Of a stretch of DNA of 64,000 nucleotides, positions 7,440-60,100 are shown in pieces. Location of the stretch: the NCBI GenBank assembly GCA_013115145.1, contig JAAPAO010000048.1, positions 1 through 64,000 on the forward strand, written 5' to 3'. The DNA is from Perkinsus chesapeaki ATCC PRA-425 (Eukaryota; Protista; Perkinsozoa). Position 1 is the stretch's first letter. Each line of letters opens with the position of its first letter. Below the pieces are notes generated by a model. It was not told where the DNA came from and did not search any database. It saw only the letters and a list, made by a program, of their open reading frames with translations. The position numbers were made by a program, and so were the translations under genes.

Positions 7440-8411
7440 TTGTGCCGTCAACATTGGGAGCATTGTCGACAACCGCAGGGGTCGCTGGAGCATCGGCTAC
7501 AGGTAATGATCAGAAGGAAATTTGGTAGTACTCGGGAAGTTCTTAGTGACTTCGTATCGACCTTTATGATGGTGAAAGCCTGTAATTGATTTCCACTGGC
7601 TTCCATGGACCATTTACCATATCAATGTCTACATCTTACGTGTCTAAAGAGAGCATCCTGTCGACTGTGCAGATAGTGAGTATCTTAGATGTCGTCATCC
7701 GTTCCAATTCCCATACTGCCTTATGTGGAGTAAATGGGCTTTCCTCCTCGTCGCCGTATTGTCTTAAGAAATACCCCTCTATAAAGTGGTATAGGACTTC
7801 AGTTACCCCAGCCCTCCTTATCTTAGGTTCGTATATATTTCACCGTAAGCCAAGGCTGTGTGGGAGGATCGGGGAGTTCCTGTTGCTGGTGTATGCAGTA
7901 TTTAGACTCTCTTTCTTTGCTGGACATACATTACGGGGACGACTTGAGTCTAGTGATGCTATAGAGGAGAGCGATCGGTTAAGAGGTGATGGCAGTTGAG
8001 GCCTTGGCGGTTGGAAAGGTGGAATTCGTAGAAACGCATTTTTGCGGAGACGTCGTGGACAGTACCTCTAGATGGAAGCATAGGCGGCCTTTGGATTCAG
8101 TTTCTTGTACCGAGTTGAACAGTCGAGTATCATCGTTGAGCTCATCCCTGGAAGCAGACACGAGGCTGTTGGATAAAATGGTCCGTTATGTTGGCGGAAT
8201 GGGAATGGATGAGGTATGTGGTTCGACAGGTATCGGGTTCAATTCCCGTGTGATGTGTTTTTGGTAGAATGGGACATCAATGCTGGCGGATCAACAGCGG
8301 ATAGTTGACGATAAGACTGAGGAGTTGAGTGTCGCAAAGCATCGGCGAGATGACTGCTATGAGCGAGCTGCAGAGTGGGAGGAGGTGGGTAGGGCATCAT
8401 CGGCAGCCTAA
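7440..8411 (+). CDS. Hypothetical multi-exon gene; 5' end uncertain, last intron 8214-8267, stop 8409-8411
   Basis: Removing the GT-AG intron 8214-8267 joins ...GGMGMDE to NGTSMLADQQRIVDDK...SSAA* in frame. Confidence 0.5.
8214..8267 (+). repeat. Intron carrying a tRNA 3'-end-like element
   Basis: TCGGG TTCAATT CCCGT GTGATGT G TTTTT at 8233-8262. Confidence 0.65.
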
Positions 8412-8689
8412 GCGGGGTGCTCACAGCCTCACGGGTGTTGTCCGGAAGTAATAGATAGATAAGATAAAGAGTGTAATTGACAAACAAACAATAAATCTTC
8501 AATTTTGCGTGCAATGACGCGTCAGCGAGGTTTAAGATATAGGCTTTCGGTCGCAATGTTAAACGCATCTTCCGGGGGTTCGCGGCCTATTACCTACAAG
8601 TCATTTGTATCGTTACCATCACCGTTAAACTTTGAGAGTTAGAAAAGTCAATCTATAGTTGCAAACCTTCGGAGCACAGGTATAGGTCA

Positions 8690-9580
8690 GCCAGTGTGGA
8701 AGGTTTCTTAAGTTGTCCAATTCGCAATTAGGGATTATTTCATCTTTAATGTATGAATTTTGTCCGACGCTGGGAGTAGCCCTTTTCCGCCAACTCGAGA
8801 AATAATTGTGCTCGAGTGGTTCCCTCAAAAGTTGTAGTGTTGGTAGATCAGATACGATCGATAGTGGTTGAGAGACTTCGACGACAAGAGATATCACCAC
8901 TGAAGATATCTGACTTCTTGGCTATCACTTACATAAAATTGCTGATAGACGTTTATTACTCTGATGGTTACTCAGATGGTCTCAGAGGCACATACCCTAT
9001 CCACCACTATCAGTAGGTCTACTAGCTTCACAAGCAAAACGGTATCTGAGCCGCTTACTTGAGCTGTCGGCGAAAAACTGTAGTCAAAAATGTCTTCCAA
9101 TAAGAAAACTGTGCTCGGGGTTGCACATAGTACGAGTAGACCCGCTAGTGAACGCAGTAACATAAATAAAGCATCCTCCTCCGCAGCATTGCCTTTGAAG
9201 TGTAGGAACACTAAGGAGGCAAGTAGCAGTAAAGCAATATCTCTTGCCATGCCTCCAAAGCTAGGCCATTTTCCCGAGTTATTACGGACTGTAGAAAGAC
9301 GCAGAAATCGAGGGCCGGAGTTTTCCTGGAATTGAATGTTTTATTGTAGAGAATGTCCCGAATTACACTTAGTATTTATAGCTTCAGTTTCACCTCTAAT
9401 TTGCTGTCCAAGCACATACGTAAAGCGTCCATGCCAATAATGGCATGTGAGCCGGTGAATGACGTATGTCTGGATTGGCCGGAGATGACCCCCACTGCTG
9501 TTATTGCGGCTGTGGCTGGCGCAGCGACGTCAAGTAGGACGCAGCTGGGGTATTTGTGTGAATATGCAGGAGGCAATGCT
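8690..9580 (-). CDS. Hypothetical multi-exon gene (approximate limits)
   Basis: Open segments MARDIALLLLASLV...PTAQ|gtaagc and ag|VVISLVVEVSQ...CAPK|gt, flanked by splice-like sites. No domain recognised. Confidence 0.3.
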
Positions 9581-56800: not shown

Positions 56801-57159
56801 CTTGTTGTTAACCACCACCACCATCATCATCAGTTAACCTTGTGTTGAAGTGTATCGGTTAATGCTGGATTGAGTGACTCCATTTTAGTCGTCCTTTAAG
56901 GACTCGCTTCTTCAGGGATACTTCTCTTAAGTTTTCAGTATATTTTATTGCTTACAATTACGAATTTAGTCACTGAATCCATTCCAATTAACCATTATGT
57001 GTGTATCTGGTAGGAATAGTATGGAACATCCGTCACGCGCCACGAAAATAGTATCGGTTTTCTCCTGGAGAGTTTGATGCAACTGAAGTTATTCGATAAA
57101 AAAGTATATAAAAATGCAATTACTATTGTCAATAATTCTTGCAGTGTCATTACAATTAC

Positions 57160-60100
57160 ATGCCTCGAGTCTCGACAAGCTCCGAGCCTTCGACACCGCT
57201 TGTACCAGAAGGCAGTTACACCGTCACTGCCGATGAAGTAACAGTCTCTAGAAGAATCAGGGTGTCGGAAAACGTCGGAAGAAATGCAGGAGCCGCGGAT
57301 GGATCCTTGGTCGTTATCATGGAAAAGGAGCACCCTGACCGGAAGCGTGTGGCCGTCTGTGAAATATCGAAAAGAATGAAAGGAACGAAAGTGTACTGTC
57401 CGGCGTGGATGGGATTTGAAGAAGTTGAGATCGAGAAATTTCGGGAAGACTTTGACGACGTAGTCGAACTCGAGCTCCAGTGCAAAGATACGCATTTGAA
57501 AGATATTTGCGGTGAGGAGGTTCCGAAGGAGCTTGTGGCGTATCTTTCAAGATGCGCGAAAGGTTACTTGCTTGACAAGGAGGATGTTATCGCGGTTTAT
57601 ATCAATGGCAAATTAACTCTCTTCAATACGAAGCATGATCTGTCCGGCTGGGGTCTCGTGACAGCTGACACTAAAGTAACTGTGAAGCTGGAAGACGTGA
57701 AGACCGATAATAGAATTAATAAACCTCGAGGCTTCGAGCGCGTCGGTGGTCTGGCGGGCACAGTCCATGAGCTTGTGGCCTGTGTCGAACTACCTTTGTG
57801 TAGTCCTGAGAAGTATGCCCAGTTCGGAGTGACGCCGCCTCGAGGAGTGTTGTTGTATGGACCACCGGGCACAGGAAAGTCATTGCTGGCATCGGCGGTT
57901 GCGGAGGAGTTGGAGGTAGTGGAAGGGTTGGATCTGAACTTAACGGCAACATCATTAATAATTATAACGATGAATATGGTTGTTGTTGTTAATGATGTTT
58001 TTTATTATCCTTTCGAGTAACTCGATTTGTTAAATATAAAATACCACTTCACCATTGAGCAAGAATTCACTCTGTTGAGCTCATCTTCGGGCTCAAATCG
58101 TTTGGTACAAAAATGTATCGGAAATTCCCTCAGTAGTATCTCGACGACGTATAGCTTTGGCGACCGTGTGCGATACCCTGGATGCTGGGATGGGGATCGA
58201 TCGCCGCCGCCGTAATCATCATCATCACTGGGCGATATGACCCGGAAAATAACTGAGGGGAAGATGTATTTGTGACACAATCGGATTATGAATTCGGGAA
58301 TTGATGGCGATGTTCAGGCGAGTGGTACACCTGTCCATGTTGAGATGGTTAAATCGACGGAACTAACAAGTAGAGGGGAGGCGGCGATACATAGGTGATA
58401 TGGGGCAATTTGATGACGGTTTTATCAAACCGTAACAAATAAGAAGACAGGATATCGATATTTACCTAATAAACGGCGAAGTATAATTATAAAGCAGGAA
58501 CACTCGATAAAGCTGATGAAAGTTTATTCGTTGCTAGACTTCTGCGATCTTCTACTTTTCATGGTTATGTATAAAATACACTCTAGTAGGAACGTATTTT
58601 TTCGTTTTTACAAAATAAGAATATTTTCTGTATTTTCGTTTTCAAGTTGTATGTTGCTTTGTCAGTTTATTCGCACGTTGTCGAGACTCTGGTTTGGCTT
58701 CCCTAATATTCATTGATGAGATTGATGCAGTGTGTCCCGATCGAGATGCTCGAGGAGGCAGTAGTAGTGGTACGGAGTCGGAAAGAAGGATGGTGGCTTC
58801 GTTATTAACTGAGATGGACGGGGGAGCATCATCGAAGGAAGGTGAGGAGGTGGTGGTGGACGGTTGGTGATTATTCTTGCTCGTAATCGGTGCTACTCGT
58901 TGACGGACTCAAGATGTCATGCTTCAAAAGTAGTATACAACTTTTATTAAATTAATGTTGCTGGTATATGATGATAACCTGCTGTACTCCTTTGATGATG
59001 CAAGTGGATAGAGAGCGGAATCATCACAATTGTCGGTGCGTGCTAGAGAAATATTCACTCGACTTGCTGCGCTGAGAGAATTCGTGTTTGCCGTATGATA
59101 GCAGCACTATGAGCGGATTGATCGATCCAGGTTCTGTCAACATTAAACCGATCTTACTTTCTCAATCATAAATTCTTCATACTTGGGAAAACGCCAGTCC
59201 AACTCATTTGCCTAGGAGAAATGCGCGCCTCTTATACCAACCTTCACCACAAGAAAATGCATTCCGTTCGAACCCGTCACGTGATATTTCTAGCCTGTCT
59301 TGTTGTGTGTTGGAATCAATCGGCAGACTCAATCGGTGTTGAGAACTCTCTCATGAAACTGTCTTGAGTATTTACTTTGTCTGACGTAGCGCAGGAAATC
59401 GAGTCAAAGTTTATGGGATTCAACACTCTGTTTTGCCAACGTACTAGTACACGGGTACAGTTAACAATTACGGCTTATCTTCCGAGAAATGATGATTTAA
59501 CTTTGTTAACTTGGAAGAAAAATCGAAGAAAAGTTGGTAGGTGACATTATAATTTTGGATGGGGGCTAATGGTATTTCGGATGTATGATTTTTGCTCAGG
59601 TCCTCCACTCGTCGTCCTGGGTGCCACTAATAGGCCTAATGCCATCGATCCTGCAGCACGGAGAGCTGGACGCTTCGAATTAGAAGTATCTGTTGGAGTG
59701 CCGGACGAGCCAAGTCGAGGAGATATAATAGAGTAAGAATTGAAGAGGTTGTTGTCATCAGCTAGCTTCTCGTTGTGTTCCGGACTTGATGGAACTTCCA
59801 TGGCAAATTTCGTGGGACCCCATTTTCTTTTGAAAATAAAAATTGTGTTAAACAGGATGTAATGCCAAACAGCATGTTTGGCAAACTTCCATCGTGGAAT
59901 TTTGGCATTTGAGCGCTTTGAGGGTTTTCAAGGAGAGTTTTACGGTTGAACTGTGGAACAGTGGAAACCTCATTAGGTGGAGGAGCTTGTAGAGTTATCA
60001 GATTTTATAACTTATAAGAATCAGGAGGTTGTCCTTCGAAAAGACGACATCTCGTATGATGATCGACGTAGCTCGGATCGCTGCCGACTTGACAATCGTG

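Follow-up and report, generated by a model that had tools for sequence, protein, structure and literature searches.

Old tRNA-gene relics in tiny introns of Perkinsus chesapeaki and the long-term retention of their B-box cores

In a 64 kb stretch of Perkinsus chesapeaki DNA (contig JAAPAO010000048.1; hereafter the window, to which all coordinates refer), we analyzed a family of short elements laid out like the 3' end of a tRNA gene, which lie in tiny introns of unrelated protein-coding genes. The origin of these elements from tRNA genes and their long-term retention are well supported. The fuller reading, in which they are old tRNA-gene relics whose boxes have been kept by selection, most plausibly as docking sites for TFIIIC, is in our judgment about evenly poised. 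Under this reading, most relics would comprise roughly the last 30 nt of a tRNA gene, namely the T-arm (which doubles as the B box), the 3' acceptor strand, the discriminator A, and a T-run as Pol III terminator, and a few would be near-complete pseudo-tRNAs that include an A box. They would form the bulk of tiny GT-AG introns in P. chesapeaki protein genes, in either orientation, and would be older than the split of at least three Perkinsus lineages. Purifying selection would have kept the B-box/T-arm core, plus the A box where present, and we infer that the core would act at the DNA level as a TFIIIC docking site, like the extra-TFIIIC (ETC) sites of yeast and human. Splicing would have co-opted further parts of the relic: the discriminator A and the T-run as branch and polypyrimidine region in sense copies, and the acceptor or terminator end as the source of the 5' splice-site GT in antisense copies. 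Copies of one gene would also be homogenized by gene conversion or local re-seeding.

Orthologous DNA was available from Perkinsus olseni (contigs L002 and L003) and from a Perkinsus-like third species, here called species X, whose contigs L001 (9 kb) and L004 come from the Logan assembly of run SRR12548988. As enrichment controls, the window was shuffled 100 times for each motif count.

Layout of the elements and their introns

The copies in the window, 12 of them in a gene encoding the TOR kinase, are listed below with the strand of the element. Where an intron is called a candidate, the basis is continuity of the open reading frame (ORF) alone, unless stated otherwise.

5480 to 5552, plus strand: pseudo-tRNA intron, starting at 5480 (copy 5529); A box 5487-5498, B box 5528-5538, position 73 at 5549
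8214 to 8267, plus strand: 54-nt intron with a sense copy (8237; element 8233-8261); orthologous intron with GGGTTCRAWTCCC and T-run in three species
19062 to 19110, minus strand: TOR intron with an antisense copy (19081); 3' end 19101 or 19110; 5' splice site from the acceptor strand
19190 to 19235, plus strand: TOR intron of 46 nt, sense copy
19377 to 19425, plus strand: TOR intron of 49 nt, sense copy
19566 to 19618, minus strand: TOR intron of 53 nt, antisense copy (19595-); the reverse complement of the T-run is GTGAGAAAAT at the 5' splice site; flanking exons match P0003
19734 to 19771, plus strand: TOR intron of 38 nt, sense copy
20481 to 20530, minus strand: TOR intron of 50 nt, antisense copy (20505-); flanking exons align to P0003 and P0010
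21896 to 21955, minus strand: TOR intron of 60 nt, antisense copy (21915-), GGTTCAATTCC
L001 228-295: orthologous intron of 21896 to 21955, with GGTTCCATCCC kept on the same strand
22562 to 22601, minus strand: TOR intron of 40 nt, antisense copy (22574-), cut within the T-stem; 12-nt core identical in L001
23330 to 23358, minus strand: antisense copy (23354-) within the long TOR intron 22813-23412; not in the 34-nt orthologous intron of L001
28668 to 28717, plus strand: TOR intron of 50 nt, sense copy (28690); ortholog L001 3822-3883
29128 to 29173, plus strand: TOR intron of 46 nt, sense copy (29144); ortholog L001 4461-4525
29667 to 29695, plus strand: sense copy (29671+) within the 212-nt TOR intron 29566-29777, about 80 nt before the 3' splice site
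45308 to 45364, minus strand: sense copy in a 57-nt intron of the minus-strand DNA ligase I-like gene; the splice joins open frames of 150 and 44 codons
49583 to 49630, minus strand: candidate intron (may reach 49708), sense copy (49609)
51916 to 51966, plus strand: candidate 51-nt intron, sense copy
53763 to 53821, plus strand: candidate 59-nt intron of a minus-strand gene, antisense copy with no T-run
54843 to 54871, minus strand: degenerate copy with loop ATCGATC in candidate intron 54774-54907, whose boundaries are tentative
59262 to 59290, plus strand: degenerate copy (CGTTCGAACCC) in an AAA ATPase gene; TTTCTAG after the element; candidate intron

An earlier sequence-only reading of the window had listed 18 copies and had recognized in them the layout of a tRNA gene 3' end. 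A T-arm-like element is indeed present at all 18 places, although the one at 49583 had to be reassigned to the minus strand and two further copies, 21915- and 5529+, had been missed. The layout itself is upheld: a TTCRANN loop is followed by a 5-nt stem strand, a 7-nt acceptor strand, a discriminator, and a T-run, with no encoded CCA, and a near-complete pseudo-tRNA intron with an A box is present as well. Our recount agrees with the earlier figures both for the A located 13 nt after the loop, found in 15 of 18 copies, and for the T-run, which is at most 0-1 nt away in 14 of 16. The exceptions to the former are 8237 (G), 19081 (C), and 22574 (T), and in the last two the element is cut by an exon. 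C56 is intact in 20/20 window copies. Most copies start 11-23 nt upstream of G53 and stop at the T-run; they have only a 17-22 nt core in common, the longest identity between any two being 18 nt, and their acceptor strands vary from copy to copy.

The sequence-only reading had looked to enrichment over controls and to phasing in an unbiased set of matches, and both were found. The B-box consensus GGTTCGANNCC, with at most one mismatch, has 31 matches in the window against 9.3 expected, a number that none of the 100 shuffles reaches, and the strict geometry GTTCRA-N14-ATTT has 9 matches against 0.46 expected (0/100 shuffles). An unbiased GTTCRANNC scan gave 35 matches, about half of which continue into the 5-nt stem strand, 7 nt, A, and T-run. 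Leaving aside one tandem array, GGATCGAAC(C) is the most over-represented 9-11-mer in the window. The copies are not functional tRNA genes: ARAGORN found no tRNA in the window or in L001-L004, and Rfam, applied to the whole window and to short stretches, yielded nothing above threshold for tRNA or U6; the glocal models need more sequence than the T-arm fragments offer. The best Rfam tRNA match, at 22554-22613, scores 21.7 bits, below the gathering score of 29.

The plus-strand gene at ~16.5-34 kb was identified as the TOR kinase from the mTOR, FRB, and PI3/PI4-kinase domains on the orthologous contig and from its alignment to P0003 and P0010; about 18% of its introns carry a copy. Its exon blocks at 21.8-34.2 kb were defined by translated alignment to L001, and those further upstream by alignment to the distant TOR proteins P0003 and P0010. 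Protein homology and orthologous DNA thus place the TOR elements between exon blocks, in GT-AG intervals of 38-60 nt and in both orientations, with two of them inside the longer introns 22813-23412 and 29566-29777. Copies 5529 and 8233 belong to a gene whose 370-residue exon, 9990-11099, is 100% identical to a P. chesapeaki hypothetical protein; synteny of the window with L003 and L004 stops just past this exon, and synteny between P. olseni and species X continues. Further hosts are the DNA ligase I-like gene on the minus strand (45308), the AAA ATPase gene (59262), and 3-4 others. The earlier description of copies in unrelated genes on both strands therefore stands, with some 7 or 8 hosts in place of six. 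The assignment to introns has the support of homology or orthologous DNA in the case of 5529, 8233, and the TOR copies; for 45308, 49583, 51935, 53781, and 54841, the basis is ORF continuity across a GT-AG interval and nothing else. The splice junction in the ligase gene falls in a region that we take to be conserved in DNA ligase I.

It is very improbable that the family is an artefact of chance or composition, or that exons have been misread as introns. The degenerate copies 54841 and 59262 and three others, whose introns are supported by ORF continuity alone, would fit such an explanation, but it is contradicted by the shuffle controls, by the homology-defined exon boundaries, and by the orthologous retention described below. 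A minimal-intron dynamic-programming gene parse made independently of homology skipped real exons or cut false introns and was discarded. Two assembly gaps lie within TOR introns, 24240-24339 next to a 37-nt tandem array (unit at 24130-24239) and 26882-26978 next to a 63-nt array (unit at 26637-26881). The exons on either side of both gaps are colinear with L001 and no copy lies closer than 850 nt to a gap; the gaps have no effect on the T-arm intron finding. Two small RNA runs labelled P. chesapeaki gave no match to the TOR stretch.

The position of the elements within their introns differs with orientation. Sense copies stop 0-8 nt short of the AG, with the GT 11-23 nt upstream of G53, so that the discriminator A and the T-run take up the places expected for the branch site and polypyrimidine tract. 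Antisense copies adjoin the 5' splice site with their 3' end, and the GT is the reverse complement of the acceptor strand, of the T-stem, or of sequence just beyond the T-run; the resulting 5' splice sites include GTGGGTG (19062), GTAAGGC (21896), GTGGGAT (22562), and GTGAGAAAAT (19566). A T-run follows 12/12 sense copies but only 2/7 antisense copies (19595- and 23354-); in 20505-, the exon boundary lies 4 nt past position 73 and there is no T-run. Retention of the T-run is thus largely explained by splicing, and the earlier claim that it is not just a polypyrimidine tract stands weakly, on 19595-, 23354-, and the interior sense copy 29671+. Because 23354- and 29671+, the two interior copies, keep their T-run far from splice sites, they show that it was part of the ancestral element.

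Retention of the core in orthologous introns

Between the window and species X, 224 of 682 four-fold sites (33%) are identical, compared with 89% at codon positions 1+2. This means that neutral sites have reached saturation, and ordinary intron sequence can no longer be aligned. Seven copies entered the ortholog test: 8237, 21915-, 22574-, 23354-, 28690+, 29144+, and 29671+. The B-box/T-arm core is kept in the same intron and on the same strand in five of the seven, for copy 8237 in all three species and for 21915-, 22574-, 28690+, and 29144+ in species X. Four of the five B-box matches in L001 (at most one mismatch) fall in the introns orthologous to these last four, which make up 2.7% of the contig, and at the eight fixed B-box positions the window agrees with species X in 36/40 comparisons. 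The core having been retained while neutral DNA was scrambled, the B-box motif is probably still in use, and the retention of the antisense copies 22574- and 21915- points to a role at the DNA level. The sequence-only reading had offered selected extra-TFIIIC sites as one of its alternatives; core retention at saturated divergence supports the selected part, and the TFIIIC part is a proposal.

As to the other alternative, no evidence was found that introns were made by tRNA- or SINE-derived fragments (short interspersed elements, SINEs). The two remaining copies of the test, 23354- and 29671+, are missing in species X, where the introns measure 34 and 67 nt compared with 600 and 212 nt in the window. 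The reverse case is a T-arm copy at L001 3325, within the T-arm module of intron 3314-3370; the matching window intron, 27363-27403, carries a different motif, a CGCACTCGGAAGATTTT-type sequence like that of intron 30520-30573. In all three lineage-specific cases, the intron position is common to both species and only the content differs; no intron-creating insertion was seen. It appears that intron content turns over while intron position stays fixed. A SINE-derived or introner origin likewise received no direct support: inspection by eye of the flanks of the interior copies 23354- and 29671+ found no target-site duplication or terminal repeat, and self-BLAST of the introns that hold them found no larger repeat unit.

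Introns that are syntenic between P. olseni and species X carry additional copies common to both, at L002 11518 and 13233 and at L004 4906 and 6449. In the P. olseni copy at L002 ~11490-11545, an upstream GGAGGTC pairs with the acceptor strand TACCTCC to give a 12-bp minihelix-like hairpin; the pairing is absent from the species X ortholog.

The most informative case is the intron at 5480, which starts directly after a conserved exon and contains a pseudo-tRNA (5487-5549). Here, the canonical A box TGGTAGAGTGGT is followed 41-42 nt downstream by GGTTCGATTC; with respect to copy 5529, the A box TGGTAGAGTGG lies 42 nt upstream of G53. A three-species alignment (P. chesapeaki, P. olseni L002, and species X L004) shows the two boxes preserved at a spacing of 41-42 nt, whereas the ~20 nt between the A and B boxes, plus the acceptor region, are randomized. 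No D-stem can be drawn in this intron. Conserved boxes flanking a randomized interval are what selection on two TFIIIC contact sites predicts; neither a T-arm RNA hairpin nor tRNA-gene conversion tracts predict such a pattern. This conservation of A and B boxes is the main reason why we rank TFIIIC docking first. A-box-like matches also lie 45 nt upstream of copy 8237 and, as TGGCGGAGTAGG, 53 nt upstream of G53 in copy 49609.

Competing explanations for the conserved core

Several observations weigh against TFIIIC docking. The 5480 intron is a single locus, and A boxes are not enriched across the window, with 24 matches against 16.8 expected and 5 of 100 shuffles reaching 24 (not significant). 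Conservation does not stop at the 11-nt B box but continues through the T-stem (CCGGG...CCCGG), a part that TFIIIC is not known to recognize, and some orthologous stems show compensatory changes. Unrelated motifs are also conserved in introns, so another factor or a more general cause is possible. Finally, the copies have not evolved independently. At the 22 element positions outside the fixed B box, copy 28690 agrees at 18/22 with its paralog 20505-, located 8 kb away in the opposite orientation, compared with 6/22 for its ortholog, and copy 29144 agrees at 16/22 with paralog 19393 compared with 9/22 for its ortholog. Gene conversion or local re-seeding spreads sequence among copies of one gene, and such homogenization could mimic conservation. 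As a consequence, compensatory stem changes are weaker as evidence for RNA structure, and an explanation by concerted evolution stays alive.

According to that explanation, the copies have no function of their own and have been overwritten or re-seeded by conversion, by tRNA genes, or by a mobile tRNA-derived element. Beyond the closer match to paralogs than to orthologs, it draws on the loop TTCGATC, present in 10/12 TOR copies but 1/8 elsewhere, on the identical 18-nt core of 23354- and 19595-, on the existence of three lineage-specific copies, and on the intron position that carries different modules in the two species. It can also point to P. marinus, in which some tRNA genes occur in hundreds of copies and Dada transposons target tRNA genes (Kojima and Jurka, PMC3706591), which shows that tRNA genes are unusually dynamic in Perkinsus. 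However, retention in the same intron and orientation (5/7) is far above the ~18% of TOR introns that hold a copy, and the acceptor strands are not alike among copies. The upstream family consensus is CCAC in the window TOR copies but AGGTC in P. olseni and species X, yet the T-arm is the same. No target-site duplication, terminal repeat, or larger unit was found that would mark a mobile element, and at 5480 the boxes alone are conserved, which speaks against tRNA-gene conversion tracts. We therefore regard concerted evolution as an unlikely explanation, but one to be taken seriously.

A second explanation places the signal in RNA, as a T-arm hairpin in the pre-mRNA or excised intron that is read by Pus4/TruB or Trm2-type enzymes or by a factor defining short introns. 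Compensatory differences between copy 28690 and L001 3857 (pair 51:63, G-C versus A-T; pair 52:62, A-T versus G-C) are consistent with it, as is stem pair 50:64 of copy 8237, which reads C-G, T-A, or T-G across species. By hand count, pairing is found in 35/60 cells for the outer three stem pairs, compared with 37.5% expected by chance. For G.T against A.C stem mismatches, the ratio is 14:6 among sense copies and 1:4 among antisense ones; a need for pairing in the transcribed strand would produce a bias in this direction, although the difference is not significant (p = 0.12, with copies that are not independent). In contrast, antisense copies are conserved too, although their RNA has no T-loop sequence; the conserved A box of the 5480 intron has no matching D-stem; several conserved copies have badly eroded stems; and the "compensatory" differences may stem from overwriting by a paralog. 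Taken together, an RNA-level signal seems improbable.

A third explanation, which we find about as improbable, is that the T-arm is the site of another DNA-binding protein and one of several cis-regulatory words in tiny introns, its tRNA ancestry being incidental. Other conserved intron motifs make a factor other than TFIIIC a live alternative: at least three further modules, in both orientations, are kept in species X, namely AATTTCGTGGCGC(A)GTGAC, GGCGGAGCGAAGCG, and the palindrome AAATCGATCAnGTGATCGATTT. Against it, the conserved positions of the T-arm match the universal B-box consensus, C56 included, and one intron conserves a canonical A box at its canonical spacing, a pairing specific to TFIIIC.

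These other modules are of interest in themselves. AATTTCGTGGCGC(A)GTGAC occurs at 28813+, 29288-, 46960+, 49160-, 56112+, 57043-, 60464+, 61229+, and 61645+, and more weakly at 42414-; intron 29566-29777 has a related copy close to its start, with a counterpart in the orthologous intron of species X. Some of these copies are A-box-like (TGGCGCAGYG), and their constant 5' flank is unlike a set of tRNA acceptor strands. The module GGCGGAGCGAAGCG(A/T)TTCAT is found in both orientations at 27227-, 27962+, 28950-, 31503+, 61480-, and 62400+, and at 10736+ within an ORF; its 13-nt core is identical in the orthologous L001 intron despite saturated silent sites. Its tail seemed to resemble the 3' end of U6 snRNA, but an Rfam search yielded no match to U6, and we do not claim the relation. 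The palindrome, with a CACGTG-type center, lies at 29423, 31954, and 49797 and is kept in orthologous L001 introns. It thus appears that Perkinsus introns are organized around a restricted repertoire of conserved words, the B-box relic being the most frequent. The wider proposal that tiny introns are the main home of orientation-free conserved DNA words, with the tRNA-derived B box the commonest among them, is tentative, and we consider it possible though doubtful.

Introns and repeats in the rest of the window showed further features. TOR introns 22813-23412, 26266-27067, 27923-28493, and 30791-31342 measure 550-800 nt, compared with 34-60 nt in species X, and two more expanded TOR introns hold gap-adjoining tandem arrays. 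A near-perfect 68-nt hairpin at 12127-12194, with GGTTCAATACC at its tip, was rejected as a member of the tRNA-relic family and is an unrelated inverted repeat; Rfam gives it a microRNA-like match that is weak, at 26 bits, and falls well short of the threshold. Between 34300 and 40600 lies a cluster of 3-4 paralogous gene copies, with blocks 74-96% identical and no T-arm introns, which includes a near-perfect inverted repeat (37026-37677 versus 37846-38519).

On the wider proposal of orientation-free words in tiny introns, a density of ~20 per 64 kb would correspond to the order of ten thousand TFIIIC-type sites genome-wide, and such a network could organize chromatin or couple the passage of Pol II to the splicing of very short introns.

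Relation to known systems

The sequence-only reading did not recognize the family as a described system, and our literature search agrees: we found no published description and no paper joining Perkinsus and TFIIIC. The copies bear on two broader questions. For the origin of intron sequence, they offer a recognizable source in tRNA genes, whose relics have in part been turned to use as splice signals. For B boxes that lack a tRNA gene, they offer sites that are dense, old, and inside transcription units, where removal would have a readable effect on splicing or expression. Both questions become testable in a culturable protist. Moreover, sequence within introns of 40-60 nt can be more constrained than the surrounding coding DNA, which matters for the annotation and comparison of alveolate genomes.

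Introners, known from Micromonas, Aureococcus, fungi, Amoebophrya, and dinoflagellates, resemble the window copies in that a repeat family constitutes introns of unrelated genes, occurs in both orientations, and supplies part of the splice sites. Introner copies, however, are young and almost identical to one another, are often confined to one lineage, and carry target-site duplications or terminal repeats. The window copies are old and diverged outside the core, the interior ones show neither hallmark, and in the three lineage-specific cases the presence of the intron is independent of the element. In a survey of introners, the words tRNA, SINE, and Perkinsus are all absent (PMC9860276), and the introners of Amoebophrya are other elements, with inverted and direct repeats at non-canonical splice sites and no link to tRNA (PMC7789003).

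tRNA pseudogenes and tRNA-derived SINEs share with the copies their tRNA ancestry, A and B boxes, and a high copy number scattered in genes, and tRNA-derived SINEs can bind TFIIIC and act as insulators. A SINE, however, consists of a 5' tRNA head with both boxes, a body, and a tail, and is carried as a passenger within a long intron. What survives in the window is mostly the 3' end and its terminator; most copies have no head, body, or tail, and the element is the intron.

At the RNA level, mRNA mimics of the T-arm modified by Pus4/TRUB1 (GUUCNANNC hairpins) present the loop consensus in a 5-bp stem within Pol II transcripts. The window copies share this loop consensus; the mimics work in the sense orientation only, whereas here antisense copies are conserved too.

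The ETC sites and chromosome-organizing clamps of yeasts, and the ETC sites of human, are likewise B-box consensus sequences lacking a functional tRNA gene and conserved among relatives. As functional precedents, the yeast ETC sites come closest. Some known ETC-type loci are thought to derive from tRNA genes. At the level of sequence, the likeness extends to the 3' side of the B box: in yeast ETC sites, a 3' extension is conserved along with the B box across related species (PMC3395662), and conservation in the window copies also runs 3' of the B box. The two systems differ in number and setting, with ~8 intergenic sites in yeast compared with ~20 copies in 64 kb here, all in introns of protein genes, and, unlike an ETC site, the relic in the window also provides splice signals.

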